Assembly (NCBI GenBank): GCA_965637545.1
Contig: OZ281495.1
Span: 25,296,001 to 25,360,000, forward strand
DNA: 64,000 nt
Source of the DNA: Phallusia mammillata
Taxonomy: Eukaryota
Direction of reading: 5' to 3'
A program made the translations under genes and the position numbers. Of the stretch, positions 15,255 through 62,724 are shown in pieces; the stretch's first letter is position 1; every line of letters begins with the position of its first letter. Under the pieces are notes generated by a model. The model ran no database searches and was not told the DNA's origin. It was given only the letters and a program-made list of their open reading frames with translations.

Positions 15255-15345
15255 CCTTCGATAGCTCAGTTGGTAGAGCGGTGGACTGTAGTGGTGTTAA
15301 GCCTCAGAAATCCATAGGTCACTGGTTCGACTCCGGTTCGAAGGA
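15255..15345 (+). tRNA. tRNA-Tyr: tRNA-Tyr(GTA) with 18-nt intron (15292-15309)
   Basis: CCTTCGATAGCTCAGTTGGTAGAGCGGTGGACTGTAG-[intron]-ATCCATAGGTCACTGGTTCGACTCCGGTTCGAAGGA, followed by a T-run terminator. Nearly identical to metazoan tRNA-Tyr. Confidence 0.97.
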
Positions 15346-22300: not shown

Positions 22301-24566
22301 GTTGTAACCAACACATACAGGTCAAAGAATGAATCCCAATAGTTAGTAAAATATTCATCACCACTTCTGTACATTAAGCCTCTAAACTCAAACAGTTTGA
22401 AGGCAAGAAGTGTAAAAAGTGCAATACTTGACAAAAACAGAATTAAAACATTCAAAATTTCAGGCACTGTATTGCGGATATTTCGAAAGGCTCTTCTAAC
22501 CTATAAATATAAATGAAGTTAATTTAAAAAAATTAGAGCATGTGTTAACGAATAGATTTACCTGCCGACTTTCATTCATGTTGATCATAAAAAGTGGTCT
22601 TAAACATCTTGATATTCTAATCCCTTTGTTGCTGGTGCTCATTGTGATAACATAGACAATCATGTCAATTAACGTAATCTGAATACAAAATGAAAGTTAA
22701 ATCTGAGTACAAAATGAAATTGTTTTTCAAACACAGCAATGTATCAAAAGATTATTTCAAAAGATTACCACAATTGTGAGGGCAATAACAATATTTTTCG
22801 GATCTGTTATAAGTGTCCGCCTTGGAACAAAACATGACAACTGGAACAGGCGAAATATAATTACTGCCAAGCAGAAAATCTCCATTATCATGGTTCCCTA
22901 GAAATATAAATAAAATTTTGTTTAAAACGTGTTTTTAGATTCATTTTGCATTAAATGCACAAGAAGAAACAGTTCGTTTAATTCCAAATTCATATTTCAA
23001 TACGAACACACACATCAAAGTGACTTTAATAACTTAAAAAACAGCACACAATGAAATACTTATTACTTACCCAGTATGGAATGTAGCATCCAGGAACCTC
23101 TGGTTTTTCAAAAAGTGCAAGAAACAAAAGCAACCACATGAATAATACTGTACCAAACTGTAGCACAGGACGACTGTACGTTCTGTAACTGAGTAGTGAT
23201 GCATCATCAGTGTTGTATTCCAACGTTCGACCAAGTATTGCATCTTCAATGCAAGTTGCACCAAGCAGAATATTCTGTCGGATACAAAGCGAAAAATTAA
23301 ATTGTTTACTAAACGCGAAACGTAGACGCGACAAATTTTGCTATATTTTTACAATGTAGCCCCTAATTTGAAAAAGGTTGTTGATTTTCAAATTACCACG
23401 TGGATATGTTTGTTTACATTTTACGCTTGGGTGACTTCAGCTGATAATTTGTTGAAACAAAAACGCACAACCCTAATCCGGACCTTGAGCAGAATTACAA
23501 AGGAAGCAACTAAATATTATTACCGTAATTGCCAGCAACTGTTTACAATGACTTTTCGCAAAATGTTTAGTAATATTTGGATTGTATGTCACATTACACG
23601 AGTTTGTCCGTTAATTAAACGCAGTAACATTTATTTTTTGGAATTGCTAAAAAAAATCATTTAAGAAACTGTTTTGATGCACGTCTGTTGAAATGGTCAG
23701 TCGTGATACCAGGTATTAATAATCGCGAACAAAACGGAACCAAGGGTATTTTATAGTAGATGTAAAGATAGATGTTAAAATGGTTTTGTATCATTCTGGC
23801 TGCAGCCCAAAATCTCTATAATTCATTCTACCAGCAATATTTAGGCTACTGCTAATTGTGTTTCAAAATATTTGATATAATGGTCATTCGACCTAACCCC
23901 TATCTTGGAACGCTACTTCGACGCTGAAATATTTTTTTACCGTTATAGCCTACAACATATATTAGGTTACCATACGTCCTCTTTTTGAAGGATATGTCCT
24001 CCCTTTTAACAAAAACTAAATTGTCCCCGGGGACAAGAAAAAGTACGTTATGCCTTTGAAAACAGACAAATATACATCTTCAGCTTATTTTTTACACATT
24101 TTTATAATACAAGCTTATTTTAGTGTTGTGATAAACGTTTAACTTTATTCAAACTATAATGTAGGCTATACCGTCTAACTTCTGACGCTTTTTTGGGGGG
24201 CCCTTATAGTATATGTTCTTTTCAACAATGTGTCCTCCTTTTTGGGGATGGAAATATGGTAGGCCTAACATATATTACTTGGTGGTCAGACTCACGTACC
24301 TTTGACTTTTCTTCATGATATCTTGTTTCGGGAAACGATTTGCTTTTACCTCCCCCATCACCGGGTATTTCGCTTCCGTCGCCGGGAACTCTTTCGCTAA
24401 AGCCTGGAGTAGGCTCTGGTTGGGCCAAGTTAATAAAAACATTCACATTTTCCTGGTCAACTGTGTGGTTTGCAAGCGGTTTTACTGCTTTCTTTTTGTC
24501 CGCCAACTCTGCCTCTTCGACAAAATGTCCTTCAAGCGACACTGGCAACTCTTTGCCCTCAGCCAT
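19347..24566 (-). CDS. TPCN3: Two-pore channel, TPC3-like, multi-exon
   Basis: Exon 1 (24566-24300, MAEGKE...EKSK) splices in phase 0 to NILLGATCIEDAILGR (from 23274). Later motifs: PEILNVLILF, YFTNYWDSFFDLYVLVTTANSPDVM (pore I), VLRCLRLVRI (IIS4), FNDILHSFVTLVILTVVNQWH (pore II), AFVLEAFILEY and EVLLQKMFEGEI; stop at 19349-19347. The TPC family is secure; the TPC3 subtype is from recalled motif similarity. Confidence 0.85.
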
Positions 24567-25587
24567 TATAATGTATAAACCTAATTGTAGAAACCCTATC
24601 CGTTCGCCGACACTGGGCAGAAATGCATTACACAATGCAATGGCGACGTCGCGTTGGCGCGGGGCAAATAAACTGCAGTTGAATGATTGACAAAATCGCA
24701 TCGCCGCTTGTTTACAAAAATCATTTACTGCAAGGGGTTTAATTGATGCTTCGGTTACCACCACCATCGTTAAAATATAAGAGTTGTTGTATGTGGGTAA
24801 AGCTATTTTCACCTCAAAATCTGTTTTTGAACGACGTACTCTGCGACGAATTGCTACAGATGCAATGCGCAAATCAACAATATTACTTAAGACTCAATGT
24901 GTGGGATTTGGTTTTAATAAAATAAATATATGATGAGCAAAAATATGCAAAATGACTTCTATGTACGAGACGCAGGTAAAAACTTAGCCAGCATTCAGTT
25001 TTTGATCAATCTTGCAGTCTCTCTTATGTAGGATTATGTATTAAAATCTTGCAGCTGGTTGCAAAAATTACCAAAAAATGACATTAGCACTTATTACTTT
25101 CTTTACATTGCAAAGCACATAGATTGATAAAACGGACAGAAATTTTTGTCGTATACGAATCTCAAACAATTTTGTTTGATAGAACTGCGATGATCTTGTG
25201 GTACGGACGGTGACATAATTTAACCACTGAAGGGCGACAAAGAATACTATAGCTGTATAACAGTGATTATCATTATTCTAACCATAATTAAATAGGAATA
25301 ATCGAAGTTTGAGCATGAAAAGAATATGTGCAAACCGAAATTAACAGGTAGATAAAAAATTTTGCTTAAACAACTGAGCGACAAAGAATATAGTTCCTGG
25401 AAATCGATATAAAAATGAGTGGTAAAATAAACACGCTAAAATAAATAAAACCAGTAAAACAGGAAAACAATAAAACAAGGGATTGATGTTACTAACTGAC
25501 AAAGCTTCCTCAACCTAGCTTGGTCACTCGTTTTTAAAGATAAACAGTCTTTTGACTATGTCACATTGTTGCCTCACAACCTAAAGC

Positions 25588-26130: not shown

Positions 26131-26674
26131 CCTGCCAATCGATGATACCACTTTTATACAACAGTGTGGTGCAACTAGAGAAACCTGCGAATGTTGTGCA
26201 AAAAATAACTCTACATTGAAGCTATTGCAGTGAGATACTGTCAATCAGGAATCAGCGAATACTGTCGGGGCAGCACGCAATATATGGATGCCGTGAAAAA
26301 GTGGAAAGAAGCAAACTTAAACAGAGCTGAACACAAGGACGTCGCATTATCATAACGGCTGCAGACGTCGTTGCATTGTACCAAAGCCTCCCGAGGATCA
26401 AAGATGCAGTTTTCGAAGCGCCAAAAAAAATCTAGTTACGAGCAACATCAAATTTGCCAAAACCTGGACCTGGGACATCACAACGGCAACAAAGTCAAAA
26501 AAGAACAACAGCATAAGACTTGTCTGGTCAACTGTAAAAAAATACAAAGCAGCTTTATTGCGACATTAAGCCAGGAACCACATTAATATTTTGAAAAGGA
26601 AACCTGACATCGCCACATGTTTCGGTATCATCTTTGTTGAAAGCCCTAGAAAAGAAAATTTAGACATGCGCGAG

Positions 26675-27114
26675 CAGAGTTGCAAGTCGGGCCGGGCTTT
26701 TCGGGCCGGGTTCGGGTTCGGGCCGGGTTCGGGCCGGGTTCGGGCTTAGGTATTTGTGAGAAAACGGGCTTAAAACGGGCCTGACTTTACGTTCCGTGTC
26801 CGCCATCGTTTTTAAATAAAATCACTCAGCTAAGTAACAATTCTCTGGCTTTGACCCAATGCCCACCCTCCTCTAAAACGTATTGTTTACCCCATTGTCT
26901 ACTATTGTTCATTGTGTTTGTTGTCTTTCTCTTTTTTCTATCTCATCCTTTGTTGCAAGGCTTTCGTGGATAGGCCTGTCAATCAAAATTTCGGGCCTAA
27001 ACGGGCTTTGCAAAAACGTTTCGGGTTCGGGCCGGGCTTCGGGCTTATACTTTCGGGTTCGGGCCGGGTTCGGGCCGGGTTCGGGCTCAGATTTCGGGCC
27101 CGCTTGCAACTCTG
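26675..27114. mobile_element. hAT-type MITE with internal (TTC)GGGCCGGG repeats
   Basis: 12-bp TIR CAGAGTTGCAAG / CTTGCAACTCTG; perfect 8-bp TSD TGCGCGAG (26667-26674 and 27115-27122). A related remnant is at about 40215-40282. Confidence 0.92.
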
Positions 27115-27439
27115 TGCGCGAGGCCAAATGGCAAAAAATATTGGACGCCAAAATAAATATTTAAGAAATGGTCCTGCTTCGAGTACGTTAAAAATTTCAT
27201 CGGCACCCACCGCTATTGGTATATCCCTGCATACGCGTGCCTGTCCCACTTTTTACGTCTTATCTTTAATTTTTCTCCCTCGATTCGGTGCCCAGAGTTG
27301 CGCTTGTTTTGTTCGGGTTTTGACTTACAGGTTGGTTCAACAAGCTTTGTCAGTTAGTTACAGCAATCCCTTTTTTATTGTTAAACTGTTTTGCTGCTTT
27401 TATTTATTTTAGCGTGTTTGTTTTAGCACTCATTTTTAT

Positions 27440-27592
27440 TTAACAAAAATGTCGTTCAACTGGTGTTAATGTTAAACAAAAATACTAGTTGTTTCTATCC
27501 ATAACTTGTATTTTCGCTGACGTTTCGTCCACCAGAACGGTAGGACTTCTTCAGAGTTAAATATGCAACCTGGTGGACGAAAACGCCTGTAC
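27440..27592 (-). mobile_element. Miniature, internally deleted derivative of the Penelope-like element at 13224-13858
   Basis: Near-identical to 13230-13338 joined directly to 13822-13855, with the GIY-YIG region missing. Retains the HHR at 27557-27516. Flanked by a 15-bp direct repeat AGCACTCATTTTTAT (27425-27439 and 27593-27607). Confidence 0.85.
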
Positions 27593-27619
27593 AGCACTCA
27601 TTTTTATGTCGATGTTCAG

Positions 27620-27655
27620 AAACTGATGATGCCACATAGGCGAAATATATATTCC
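27620..27655 (+). ncRNA. Hammerhead ribozyme motif (family B)
   Basis: aaa-CTGATGA-T-GCC-acata-GGC-GAAA-TATATA-ttcc: intact core, 3-bp stem II, palindromic stem III, weak stem I. Confidence 0.7.
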
Positions 27656-29969
27656 TTTATTTGAACCGACTGATTCTCTTTTACCAAGGATTTTATCGCC
27701 GATTGGTTTTACTGTATTATAATTAAATTGGCAAGCAGTGATCGTCAGTTTAAGCCATGCTCTCGATGGTTTTGATCTATTACTTAAGTTGTCATTTTAA
27801 TATGAGCTGCACTCGAAAGCGGGCTAGAATTTTTCCCACACGACTGAAATGTGTTCCATGCTTATGTTCAAGAATTCGTCTGAATTATAGGGTTACTTAG
27901 TACCCATATGCATTTTTCGCGCAAAACCGATCTTCGATTGCTCTGGGTTACTATCAACAAGCAATGCGTTTCGGCATCGCATGTTACGTATACATAACTA
28001 AAAATGGCAAATATGCTCATAAATGTTGCCTGACTTTAAGACAAACCGCTGCTACGAAAAACCATTTGGGTTGGTTCGTGTTTGTGTTATATGAACCACT
28101 TAGCCTAAACAAGACATGCCTTGGAAAGTTTTTGTGACAAATATTGAGTTCATGACAGACACGTCACGCAGCCACGCGAGGACATACCTGATACAAATCT
28201 ATCGTCGTCGGTTATGGGGCCTCACGCCAGTAACATCAATTATTCAGACCTTTAGGAAAGTGCGAATCGACAGTTATTCTGTTGCCTCTTAGGGAACGAA
28301 TCCATGGCTTTTGAACTCCCTCAAACACACGCTCGTCATGGGAGAGTTCAAAAAACTTCGTTGCTTCGTGTTGGATTTCGAAAAACAATGGCTAAAAAGG
28401 GATTTACCTTTAGTTACAAAACTATAGACAGCCACATTATACAACCGTTACGAAAGTACACTAAACGATTTGGACTTCAAATTTATAAACCTTCATTTTA
28501 GGGGGATTTGATTAACAACTATAACAAATTCCATGATTTAAAACGCTCGTGTGATCGTTTACATTAAGAACAATAGATTCTTTAAAAATCAGATATTTGC
28601 GTTAAAACTATTTAGTGGGTGTTGTATATATACACAGTGCGTTGGCTTTTGAACATGAATAACACGAATTCCCAGTTAACTTTTTAAATAGACATACTAG
28701 TCGAGTAAACACTTATAACTTAGCTGCGTTTTTTTTACAGCGATTTTCACGCACGTATTAAGGTGTAGCCTACATCTTTACAGGAGAAAAGTTAATCAAG
28801 AATAACGTGCAGTAAAAGTACTCGACACGTAACAAAAACTACTATGCCTGCTGGTGAAAAATGTAAATGCTCAGAGAACGGTTGAATGTACAATGTTTTA
28901 TAGTTATGTAAATGACCACAAATTGTATATAAATGTTAATCAAAAGATGACGCAAAACGCTTGAAGCAGTGGCGCGTGAAGTTACGTGAACGCCCAGTCT
29001 CTCGTCGAGTGCAAATATTTTCCATCGAGCAACGTCACGCGCGTTGAAAAAAGAGTTGGGCGCGATGCGTCTTGGCCGCGCATTGTAATTTTACGATTAG
29101 TTGGCAAACAATGGCCAGTGCGCGAACTCTGCGAAGAACGAAGTCACAAGTTGCGACTGACTTATACAGTACCACTTGGAATGTTTGTTCAAAACAGAAA
29201 AAGTAAAACGGTGTATTTAGATTCCAAGCAGTTTGGTCAGGTTGGGTAGGTTGTAAAACACGTTCTCTTTTTGTAGATGAGCTATCTGTTATCTGTTTTT
29301 TTTTTATCTGTTTTTGGTATCCACAGCTTATGATCAATAGTCCCGGGATCAACTATGTTTTAGACTTGCTTTTGAAATACTAAAGCCAGGTGTGCTATGA
29401 TTTAAAATATTTGTAAATATCTAATGTAAAACGTCTTCTTAGTCGGTCAAATCTTAGTTGGGATGGTGCAAACTATGTCGTACATCTGGTTTCTGTAACT
29501 TTAGTGTGTTTTATCTCAACTTGCTGTTGCGGTGTAACTGCGCTTGCCTGTCGATTATACAGCTGGTCGCAGTCACTTTGTTGTTGATACATACACACTT
29601 TATGCACGAATTCAGTGCACAGTCGGAAAACCGCTGAAATCTTGTGACGCAGAAATAGCCGCGGGGAGCGAAGTGTGAGGAAAAGTTCGTTGGCCAATTA
29701 GTGCTGACTTCGCGTGCTTTGTTTCAGGCCGAGACCTTGTGCAGAATATACGTGTTAAGATATCTGCATCTTAGCGGAGGTGGTTTGTAAGATACTATCA
29801 AATGTTATTAAACAGTGTATTATTTCTTGACAGAAGTGCATTAAAAAGTTAATGCTTACTGCTGGAACTGTACAGTTAAAACGTTGAAACGATTCTACGT
29901 AACAATGCCCCTTGTCTGATCTGTTGACAAACGAAAAGTGGCGAAGAGCCTTCTTTAAAAACTAGAGAC

Positions 29970-51687
<21,718 letters not shown>

Positions 51688-57557: not shown

Positions 57558-57573
57558 CTTATTCAAATAGAAT
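57558..57573 (-). other. Genomic copy of the spliced leader followed by a GT donor; possible orphan SL RNA gene or pseudogene
   Basis: ATTCTATTTGAATAAG|GTGATTCA: 16/16 SL match, GT immediately after, and TGAAT/ATTCA can pair around the donor. Confidence 0.75.
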
Positions 57574-60500
57574 GAGGACCGTAATAAAATGCGTCATAAT
57601 ACGCAAATGCTATTCACCTCGGTCACCGGCGAGGGGACACAATGATAATCGAAGAAGAACAGACTAAGATCACTCGCTCTGCAGTTGTTCCTATCCAGGC
57701 AGGCGTTGCATAGCATTAGTCCGCCAATGCTGTCCCATTCAGCCGCGCAGTGTTTTAAGCAAACCATGCACTGAGAGTTCTGCTGACCGCTTGCCACGAG
57801 ACAACAAAACACAGAAACTATCGTCACTGCGTATCTAATGCTGAGGTTCCCTGCAAACCGCAATGGAACCCGCGTCTTTCGCAATTCCATATCTTCTCGA
57901 ATCACTGTCACTGCGCAAGGATGCTGCGCGCGTTTAGGGTCGTTCTCATTGCAGCCTTAACGATGTGACCCTAGTTTTCTGCAAAAAGACATTGTCAGAT
58001 AAGATGTCAGGAAATTTCAATTGTTTTAGCCAAGACATTATGACTTTACTGGACTTTTTGCACCTTGCTCTTATCGAAGTCGTACACTGGTTTATCTCCT
58101 GAGCAAAAACTGAGTTTAACTTAACGGACAATCCCGCAGCAATGCACTGGGTGACCGAATCATTCGGCTTACCGCATAAACTTTCGACTAATAATCGCTC
58201 GTATACACCCAGATTATCCAGCTCTTTCTGTGACAGGCACCAATTAAGAATTTGTGACGGCTGCAAAAGCTCGTGCCAAATTTAAAGCATTTCGACCCAT
58301 TTTAACACCGATTCGAAACCCAAATTAAACAATTGTTTTTTATCTGGTAAACGGTGAAATCTGTTCTTCAAAGTGATTTGTCTGACAAAGTTATCTCAAA
58401 CAGAGTGTAACTTGTTTACGTTACAAAAATGGCACATCTTTGCAATGCAAACAATACACATTCGAATTTCCAAAATTCAAGCAGATATTATCCTATTGAA
58501 ATTGGTAGTTGGCTGATTGGTGCCTTGCATTATCAAGCGATTTTGAAAATATTGTTGTTGAACTGGTCTGTACAATTTTAACCACCCCACACGAATTTTT
58601 GATAAGCATTCTCTAGCAGCGGTTAAGTTTTAATTGCATGTAATTTCACAACATTGACTATTAATTTAATCAGCCCTTTAGCAAATGCCATATCGACAAC
58701 TTTACACTTCTGCCATGTTCCAAATAACACTACTGAAAACTGTTGACAGTCCTAAAACAAAACTATAAGTGTAAACAGACTTGGATGTACCACGTTGTAG
58801 CATGAGTTACAGCGACAATTATAGCCTTTGTTTATCCCTGTACTGAACTGTACTCGCTAATAACCTTACCTTACACACTGCAGAAATGCGGTGCTAATCA
58901 CCAATCCTATAAGTAACGGAATCGCATAGCAAGTTTATTTGGTATATAAAACTTCCAGTTACTTCTCCTCAAGGACTTTCGCTAATGTCGCTTCTACACG
59001 CCTTAAGACGAGCCACGACCATTATAGTTCTGATATGCGGACCTCTGTGCTCTCGCTTTCTCACTTGTACGTGATTAAGCGGAATTATCGATTTTCCGAA
59101 TTTCGTTTTTGAGGTTCGCCACGTCGCGTAATCGCATTCTTTCTCGCTTAATCGCGTTTACTCCACGACACAACTGCCCACCAACATCCGTATAGCGACA
59201 CGGGTGTGGGTTTTTTCTCGGACATCCACTGCAAAGTTGTATTTTGTAACGCCCAGACTCTAACTGTTTTCTACCCTAAGAATTTAGCGTCAATCTGCTG
59301 CTTCACAAAGTGCTACATTGCTCATATAGTAATTCAAAAGTTCCTCGGTATTTAGGGCAATGTGCTCATCTCGCGGTTAACCTAAAAGCTATTTGAGACT
59401 CCTTGATCTCGCTCGGCTCTCAGTGATTCAACATGGCGTATAAACAGCGCGAGATTTTTGCCGATTTATCACGCAGGTGTTTACGATACCCTGACAAATC
59501 TGCTCTGGAAAGTTGAACGGATTATCTCACCAGTACACAAGCAGAGTTGTTTTATGTGGCTTACAAACCTTTTAAAATCGCCTTACCCCACCACAACTAT
59601 TCGTCGCCGTCATCTGGGTCATTTGTGAGTGTTTTTTTGGCTTAAACTATACAGAATTATTGGTTGGCGGTGTTCGTAAGATTTTAATGCTTTGCGCCTC
59701 GGGGATAGCTGCAGTCTACTCGATTTTCGGTGAATCAGTAAAACCAAGGTTAAGAAGTATACCCAAACGTCCCGAAATCGGGTGACCTAAATGCATTATT
59801 GCGGATAATGCAGATACCAGACGGAACCAATTTCCGATCAGAATCTTTATCACCCAGTTAACGCTTCTTGCGCTTTATACCGATTTACGTCATCTTGCGT
59901 CATAAGTGAAGGTATTAAAAGCACGTTATAAGAGGCGTTGTATTTGGATTGCCTTTGATGACACGTGGTGCACGCAATTGTGACGTTTGCCTATTTCCCT
60001 TTCGTGAACAAATGAATACGGAAAACGTTAACTTCAACGGCAATGCGTCTTCTCACGCTTAACCCCATTCTAAAGGTATTCGCTTGCCTGAAACATCTCC
60101 GAAAGAGCCTAAAGTGTTATTATCCGGGCATATCCGAGAATCATAAACTTTCTAGCACGTTTGGAAATGTCGCACAGCCGGTTTTGGGACGATTTTTGAC
60201 CCTAAAGCGAAGATGCACGGACGCGATAAGTGTATCGTTGGCGCATAGGGCATTTTCACGAGTATGCAAAGCGCAACGTTTGGACGAGCAAACGACCACG
60301 ACTTTGACAGATAACGGCTTAGCTTGTTTATTTTTGTTACTTATCGTTTTTTCATATTTTACTTCGGTTGCTGGTCAAAGCGTTTCGTGTTTACGTACAT
60401 TTAACATTTTTAAGTCATACTATCTGCTATGCATCCAGCCAAAAGCAAACGTCTGTTTTCTTATCTCAACTGTCCCTTACGCCACCCTTGCCTAAGCGCA

Positions 60501-62619: not shown

Positions 62620-62724
62620 ACTAAGAATGGAAAATCATTTCCTAGAAACGAAATCAGTCCATGAATATCGTGGAATTATATATTTTGCCTAATTGACTTT
62701 TTCAGTTCCTTATTCAAATAGAAT
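62620..62724 (-). mobile_element. SL-headed degenerate family-B hammerhead element
   Basis: SL (62724-62709), then GAA-CTGAAAA-A-GTC-aatta-GGC-AAAA-TATATA-A-TTC, then a tail TTTCGTTTCTAGGAAATGATTTTCCATTCTTAGT homologous to 47388-47421. Confidence 0.8.

Follow-up and report, generated by a model that had tools for sequence, protein, structure and literature searches.

Short sequences that join a complete host spliced leader (SL) to a hammerhead ribozyme (HHR) are dispersed through this genome, and they are very probably retrocopies of RNA from the tails of Penelope-like elements (PLEs) that had been SL-trans-spliced at an acceptor within helix I of the hammerhead. Judged on sequence, the form with an AG and the form with an SL share one junction, this junction is an acceptor in helix I, the elements are PLEs, and the copies are dispersed between unrelated flanks. 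Both forms occur in the window, that is, the whole stretch of 64,000 nt that was analysed. The genome searched comprised 240 Mb in 312 contigs, and the work on the elements rests on 96 loci of 3 kb.

The limits of one inserted 105-nt unit are exactly window positions 62620-62724 (minus strand), where an exact 16-nt SL is followed by GAA, a decayed minimal HHR and a 48-nt tail. The SL (ATTCTATTTGAATAAG, 62709-62724, −) forms the 5′ end of the retrocopy, and its upstream flank is unlike that of other SL loci. The trinucleotide GAA (62706-62708, −) makes up the 5′ strand of helix I jointly with the last AG of the SL; in the covariance model (CM) alignment these bases pair with UUCC at 62672-62675 (GGAA/UUCC), and helix I covaries across families. 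The hammerhead stretch that follows (62668-62705, −) reads CTGAAAA-A-GTC-AATTA-GGC-AAAA-TATATA-A-TTCC down to 62668 and holds the boxes CUGAAAA and GGCAAAA, stem II, the UAUAUA palindrome and the 3′ strand of helix I. The CM match to this copy spans 62668-62715 (−), with 39.7 bits and an E-value of 2.6e-9. Since the two boxes carry the core mutations G8A and G12A, the copy cannot be an active ribozyme. The remaining 62620-62667 (−) is a family-C tail with the conserved GACTGATTTCG box, ending in ...CCATTCTTAGT, the 3′ end of the element. On the trans-splicing reading, the 105-nt unit as a whole is an old SL-headed retrocopy that has since mutated.

A second SL-headed copy was found at 45385-45442 (−); its SL (45427-45442) is followed by ATA and by a much degraded HHR (CTTATGT...AGAAACATATTC). 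It is too decayed to reach the CM threshold and corresponds to C2:25341398-25341442 in the genome pattern list. In both copies the SL ends exactly 3 nt before a CTGA-like box, as the earlier note had read them; the term ribozyme used there suits the family and not these two members, which, to judge from their mutated cores, are old and catalytically dead. Altogether, the window contains three perfect SL 16-mers (45427-45442, 57558-57573 and 62709-62724, all on the minus strand) and one match with 2 mismatches, against 0.09 expected. The SL at 57558-57573 (−) is followed by GTGATTCACGTTGTT..., which is single-copy in the genome and unlike either a hammerhead or an SL RNA gene; this 57.5-kb SL-headed sequence may be a host mRNA retrocopy.

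The unspliced form is found at three further places in the window. A family-A PLE tail (27438-27839, +; limits drawn from the depth of DNA-run contigs) consists of a pyrimidine tract, an AG at 27618-27619, an intact HHR at 27620-27660 and a tail, and was scored by the CM with 63.5 bits and an E-value of 1e-16. Its junction ...gttcag|AAA-CTGATGA places an acceptor-like sequence where the SL sits elsewhere, which agrees with the earlier description of this copy. Just upstream, window 26634-27169 has a summed DNA-run contig depth about 1500-7000 times the single-copy level of 27 and is a separate high-copy repeat. A copy of another family (35100-35156, +; CM 44.4 bits) has the acceptor ..tttacag, with its AG at 35105-35106, about 10 nt before a UUGACGA-type core, and SL-headed relatives of this copy read SL|TTTTTATAGA-CTGACGA at the matching distance.

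The third is a family-C unspliced, 5′-truncated copy (47284-47421, +) with its HHR at 47328-47374 followed by the tail. About 45 nt of its upstream part are pyrimidine-rich and match '...gtggttttaatag|GAA' of locus L069, and the acceptor AG has been lost by mutation (..ttactg|AA). Of the polypyrimidine tracts that the earlier note had seen before the 35.1-kb and 47.3-kb copies, the first ends in an acceptor AG and the second has lost it. The tails of the 62.6-kb and 47.3-kb copies had been thought to be the same, and they do share 78.5% identity and the end ...CCATTCTTAGT. This end is common to the 47.3-kb copy (w47335), L069, L087, L051 and L049, with unrelated sequence after each. A 30-nt fragment of family-C tail (47254-47283, −) abuts the 47.3-kb copy in inverted orientation and repeats, in reverse complement, the last 30 nt of its tail (47392-47421); it is the head-to-head, heavily 5′-truncated partner of this copy.

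All five HHR motifs of the earlier note are where it had placed them (27620+, 35113+, 47335+, 45426− and 62708−), and the CM scores four of them: 27613-27660 (+), 35108-35156 (+), 47328-47374 (+) and 62668-62715 (−), with E-values from 1e-16 to 3e-9. The window ORFs near the copies (26912-27412, 43195-43587, 60043-60495 and 24222-24872) gave no Pfam match. Apart from these elements, the window holds a tRNA gene at 15255-15345 (+; 58.7 bits) whose anticodon loop is interrupted by 21 inserted nt, presumably an intron.

The CM was built from 33 HHR copies of this genome. These 33 distinct copies align on a type-I hammerhead core with invariant core columns, and the conserved boxes CUGANGA and GAAA stand in type-I order; the 62.7-kb copy (G8A, G12A) and the 45.4-kb copy violate them. 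An unpaired U follows A9 in more than 90% of copies (between A9 and G10.1; alignment column 18), and stem II starts with the pair G10.1-C11.1 (columns 19-34), which is GC in 27 of the 33. After GAA, the stretch A-UAUA-U forms a helix III of a single base pair, the loop of which is palindromic; A17 comes next, and the four or five bases after it pair with those just 5′ of CUGA to give helix I. Helix I occurs as GAA/UUC, AAA/UUU, AUA/UAU and CGA/UCG, and stem II as GCC/GGC and GCU/AGC. The core boxes alone had served to choose the copies, so that the helices provide an independent test of the fold. Pairing was observed in 84.5% of helix cells, versus 32-48% with the partners slid, and changes on both sides in 23 cells, a value reached by none of 500 shuffles.

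The predicted homodimer of the intact window copy, formed via the AUAUAUAU palindrome, has an energy of −22.4 kcal/mol versus −13.6 for two monomers. With a palindromic helix III the monomer is predicted not to self-cleave, which fits the existence of intact SL-HHR-tail copies. Rfam hammerhead models gave no match in the window at the gathering score, in the 27-64 kb part at E ≤ 10 or in locus L007; the last matched miRNA-hairpin models instead, as a result of two SL-HHR copies lying head to head. Variants with a minimal helix III are expected to score poorly on the Rfam hammerhead models. Positions 2.4-2.5 of helix I are supplied by AG, or by the terminal AG of the SL itself, and since the SL also ends in AG, helix I is the same before and after the exchange. 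An extension of helix I past the cleavage site by the 3′ half of the SL was considered and set aside, being possible on paper in family A and not in families B and C.

The exact 16-nt SL has 3860 copies in the genome, of which 3179 are followed by GT and about 681 are not. Most of the 3179 sites belong to the SL RNA genes proper (SL|GTAAGCATCAGC...), which form tandem arrays with a 553-555-bp period on one contig (C3, about 11.08-11.27 Mb) and in which the SL is joined to the consensus donor GTAAG. The SL gene repeat unit of C. intestinalis is 264 bp (PMC7986045), compared with the array period of 553-555 bp here. As the earlier note had it, the 16-mer is identical to the published Ciona SL (PMC7986045), and this match together with the donor-joined arrays establishes it as a genuine SL of this genome. 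Two further repeat types with SL+GTGCTGAT were found on contig C2 (7.99-8.83 Mb). The first, at L041-L045, reads SL|GTGCTGATGAAGTTAAACGCGTTTTGG... (L045, GTACTGAT...), with one conserved upstream sequence in common; the second, at L046-L047, reads SL|GTGCTGATGATAATG... and has a different shared upstream sequence. These repeats were rejected as PLE-type copies; they may represent variant SL RNA genes or belong to a larger unit that was duplicated.

Enrichment of HHRs 3 nt after the SL across the genome had been set beforehand as a test, and it was found. CTGA lies exactly 3 nt after a perfect SL at 112 sites, versus 0 for the reversed control pattern and a chance expectation of about 2.7, computed from the 681 SL copies without GT. 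About 11 of the 112 are of the GGTGCTGA type and are set aside from the discussion of PLE-type copies. When up to 2 mismatches were allowed, SL+NNN+CTGA was found 791 times versus once for the control. A perfect SL followed at 17-30 nt by RAAAYAT (the GAAA-AT box of the HHR) occurs 130 times versus 0, and nearly all of the matches listed are visibly hammerhead-like. Among the first 30 SL sites on contig 1, taken without selection, 14 are of the SL-HHR type and represent about 8 independent insertions. The strict hammerhead pattern CTGATGA-N9-16-GAAATATA gave 323 genome matches versus 3 for the control, and the genome-wide CM run returned at least 150 scored candidates, all with E < 2e-9.

The comparison of upstream sequences carries the main argument. 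Directly 5′ of the HHR stands a pyrimidine tract ending in YAG, and this AG plus the next 3 nt make the 5′ side of helix I. When 28 distinct strict HHRs were picked regardless of the SL, most had a family-specific upstream sequence ending in ...cag|GAA, ...tag|GAA or ...cag|AAA. The unspliced junction is ...atttcgattacag|GAA in family A, ...ttgcgtttttcag|GAA in family B, ...gtggttttaatag|GAA in family C and ...cag|AAA in other families. In SL-headed copies, the SL replaces everything 5′ of that AG (L071 and L072 in family B; L027, L049, L051 and window 62724 in family C). In the genome-wide set of 323 strict HHRs, position −3 is taken by YAG in 194 and by the SL (GAATAAG) in 26.

In some families the AG lies farther away, as in gacag|ACGA, cccag|GGCGA and tttacag plus about 10 nt (the 35.1-kb type), and their SL-headed members show the same distances: SL|ACGA, SL|AGCGA and SL|TTTTTATAGA. 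An AG at −3, −4 (ACGA), −5 (GCGA type) or about −10 thus corresponds to an SL at −3, −4, −5 or −10. At least seven junction classes have the SL exactly where sister copies have a pyrimidine tract and YAG, and the upstream contexts in which this genome shows a 3′ splice site within helix I number at least eight. Since the SL is found at the AG position proper to each family, it very probably arrived by trans-splicing and not by insertion into SL genes. The SL begins at its nucleotide 1, after flanks that are unrelated between SL-HHR loci and never resemble the SL arrays, and a complete SL exon is joined where the source has its AG acceptor, as is characteristic of an SL-tagged retrocopy.

The identity of the elements was established from their coding sequences. 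In L067, L070, L088/L089 and L093 (families A, B and C), the HHR is preceded on its own strand by an ORF that encodes a GIY-YIG domain and stops 330-450 nt before it; for L070 and L067 the domain scores above the Pfam cut-off. The L088 ORF (L088:1564-2649) also gave a weak RVT_1 match, located upstream of GIY-YIG; this ORF of 362 residues has 79 homologues (best E 5.6e-107) carrying PF00078, PF26215 and PF01541. Every PLE ORF seen is 5′-truncated. Since reverse transcriptase (RT) followed by GIY-YIG is the Penelope-like architecture, the elements are PLEs, and the link to this group that had been suspected for the window motifs is confirmed by the unspliced form being contiguous with RT/GIY-YIG ORFs. 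The SL-headed copies consist of the SL and the tail, about 100-220 nt, and in the sample of 3-kb loci none was found to run on into an ORF. Beside the PLE pair of L067, an ORF with a hAT-family dimerisation domain (L067:2-706, +; E 1.3e-20) represents the remnant of a DNA transposon.

Several features of the copies are those of retroposition. Within a family, the copies share one 3′ end, beyond which the DNA is unrelated; in the ATA family four copies end in ...GAACTTACAT, and family C ends in ...CCATTCTTAGT. Truncation at the 5′ side is common. At L040, a 99-nt SL-headed copy is flanked by a 12-bp target duplication (CCCCTGCATAAG), and at L087 a copy that lacks the SL and begins at CTGATGA has one of 13 bp. 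When 18 SL-HHR copies were scanned automatically for duplications, nothing but the L040 12-mer was clearly above the control; the target duplications, clean in two copies, are minor support for retroposition. Many HHRs are arranged in divergent pairs (minus/plus) with a spacing of 80 bp to 6.4 kb, and in the readable pairs (L067, L088) a short inverted, 5′-truncated copy abuts a longer one. Such inverted 5′-truncated partner copies are typical of PLEs. The inverted partners of SL-headed copies have varied start points, some with a partial SL (L007, L037, L049, L052, L056 and L058).

The SL also heads other sequences. It stands at position 1501 of loci with LINE-like elements (L003/L061, L008/L062), in which it is followed by an ORF1 of coiled-coil type and an ORF2 with Exo_endo_phos; the LINE family SL|GTTGCTTAGGT... 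carries the SL on 15 of its 24 genome pattern matches, at dispersed sites. In addition, two or three SLs or SL fragments stand in tandem at the head of some copies (L004, L006, L007), for example SL-TCTATTTGAATAAG-.... These tandem SLs suggest repeated rounds of splicing and retroposition and, by analogy, resemble the relict leaders of dinoflagellates. Loci L004-L006 have a conserved sequence upstream of the SL in common.

At the RNA level, assembled contigs of public runs were looked up, and contigs cannot prove a 5′ end. In X19, a run whose RNA label was guessed, one contig carries TTCTATTTGAATAAGG directly before window 27621 and ends inside the SL, and its junction joins the SL to GAA-CTGATGA. 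The SL-HHR junction that the earlier note had hoped to see in RNA is therefore present in one contig, of a run only guessed to be RNA. The upstream sequence of the unspliced form is present in contigs of X15 for family B and of X17 for family A. The contig data give a thin indication that fits trans-splicing of expressed copies.

In the proposed mechanism, transcripts containing a PLE, either its own or host read-through, would be SL-trans-spliced at the YAG acceptor to yield a capped RNA of about 100-220 nt made of the SL, the hammerhead and the tail. This RNA would keep the 3′ end used by the PLE reverse transcriptase, so that the PLE enzyme would presumably copy it in trans. Target-primed reverse transcription would proceed to the very 5′ end of the RNA and be followed by insertion, often beside an inverted, 5′-truncated partner. 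As the copies of a family share descent, independent trans-splicing events may number as few as one per junction class (at least seven) and not hundreds.

This last point bears on the strongest alternative, which we regard as possible but improbable, namely that each family captured the SL once or a few times and that SL-headed master copies were then transcribed and amplified as such. Copies do group into families that share one trinucleotide next to the SL, the LINE family with the SL on 15 of 24 matches has no unspliced counterpart among the others, and the tandem SLs of L004, L006 and L007 show that SL-bearing DNA was transcribed and spliced again. However, each of the at least seven junction classes has both AG and SL forms, and the SL-headed copies are short and show no sign of a promoter. 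Moreover, the first capture still requires trans-splicing and retroposition, so that inheritance of the SL alters the frequency and not the mechanism.

Much less probable is a switch of the reverse transcriptase, at the 5′ end of the PLE RNA, to an SL-bearing RNA as template, with no splicing involved. Template jumping is known for retroelement reverse transcriptases, and the partial SLs in inverted partners could be read in this way, but a jump would miss the exact last base of the SL exon and the exact point after the AG of each family, and the junction already exists in the contig from the run guessed to be RNA. Scarcely credible is the second origin that the earlier note had offered, a site-specific retrotransposon of the SLACS/CRE/NeSL kind inserting at the 3′ end of the SL exon in SL RNA genes. 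It would account for the direct fusion of the SL to element sequence, and such elements exist in kinetoplastids and nematodes. Yet the 5′ flanks differ between loci, the element lies 3′ of a complete SL exon without gene context (no SL-HHR copy examined was in an SL-gene context), the real SL RNA genes read SL|GTAAGCATCAGC in 553-555-bp arrays on one contig, and the junction falls at the AG proper to each family, also in the variants at −4, −5 and −10. The first origin offered there, SL trans-splicing at an acceptor next to the ribozyme followed by reverse transcription and reinsertion, is the one supported by the at least seven junction classes and the unrelated flanks. Finally, chance similarity or an artefact of assembly or cDNA contamination, which might be suspected from the lack of Rfam hammerhead matches and the degenerate SL-headed window copies, has a negligible probability in view of hundreds of diverged copies on chromosome-scale contigs versus control counts of 0-3, the covarying fold and the target duplications.

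To our knowledge, how PLEs produce their RNA template and what their hammerhead is for are unsettled questions in the field. Under trans-splicing and retroposition, the SL is a natural tag on PLE RNAs that were copied back into DNA. It marks RNAs starting exactly at the ribozyme-adjacent acceptor as substrates for reverse transcription and integration, it indicates that about 100 nt of tail is enough for mobilisation, and it offers a simple handle on the coupling of splicing and ribozyme in PLEs. Tentatively, and against the odds in our estimate, the helix-I acceptor may be a conserved working part of PLEs, with the SL giving a cap and a defined 5′ end and with the HHR and splicing acting as a switch. 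It may be speculated that the elements of this lineage need no promoter themselves and depend on the host SL at this acceptor, making use of whatever transcript reads through them. Folding of the ribozyme and splicing might likewise compete for the AG, leading either to a spliced, capped template or mRNA or to a cleaved RNA; this, too, is speculative.

A retroelement sequence adjoining the SL recalls SLACS, CRE, CZAR and NeSL-1, which insert into SL RNA genes. The copies described here were rejected as members of the SLACS/CRE/NeSL group: their 5′ flanks are unrelated, gene context is lacking and the junction is a splice junction.

The closest known relatives are the minimal HHRs that sit in the terminal repeats of PLEs (Cervera and De la Pena 2014, PMC4209133). 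All four of the published hallmarks are present here. The copies have a type-I core with an extra base between A9 and G10.1, the G10.1-C11.1 pair and a short helix I; a palindromic helix III/loop 3 implying action as a dimer; and, as in PMC4209133, many solo copies, pairs on opposite strands and a tail behind an RT/GIY-YIG ORF. Unlike the elements as described in the text consulted, copies in this genome are also headed by a host SL.

According to PMC4209133, the 3′ end of a spliceosomal intron in Drosophila virilis Penelope lies at the 5′ end of helix I of the HHR. The arrangement that recurs here, a 3′ splice site directly at helix I, so that spliced and unspliced RNAs carry different versions of this helix, is shared with the fly element. 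In contrast to its cis-spliced intron, the acceptor in this genome takes the SL in trans and the product is re-inserted in DNA. If the helix-I acceptor were a working part, the fly intron at the same helix could, speculatively and by analogy, be the cis-spliced version of the same device.

Retrogenes tagged by a relict DinoSL are well known in dinoflagellates (PMC6050394, PMC5585692). Both there and here, a retrocopy whose 5′ end in the DNA is an SL must have passed through RNA, and tandem relict SLs occur. The dinoflagellate retrogenes derive from host mRNAs of protists, whereas the tagged RNA in this case is a retroelement ribozyme tail, in a chordate lineage and without poly(A). Like retrozymes and HHR SINE-like repeats (PMC7229834), the copies are short non-coding HHR units probably mobilised in trans by an autonomous RT. 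Unlike retrozymes (PMC7229834), they show no tandem or circular-RNA organisation, and the units are, on the proposed mechanism, processed PLE pieces in which trans-splicing sets the 5′ end.

In Ciona, SL copies that lie dispersed have been termed SL RNA pseudogenes (PMC7986045, citing Yeats et al. 2010). In the present genome, no fewer than one in five of the SL copies outside the SL genes are retroelement retrocopies and not SL RNA pseudogenes. The retrocopy origin of dispersed SLs matters for the annotation of SL genes and trans-splice sites in ascidians. No description of SL-tagged PLE or hammerhead copies was found in the literature searched, and Yeats et al. 2010 may mention them among the Ciona pseudogenes. 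The PLE ribozyme and the SL-tagged retrocopy are each known from other systems; what appears to be new here is their combination in one.
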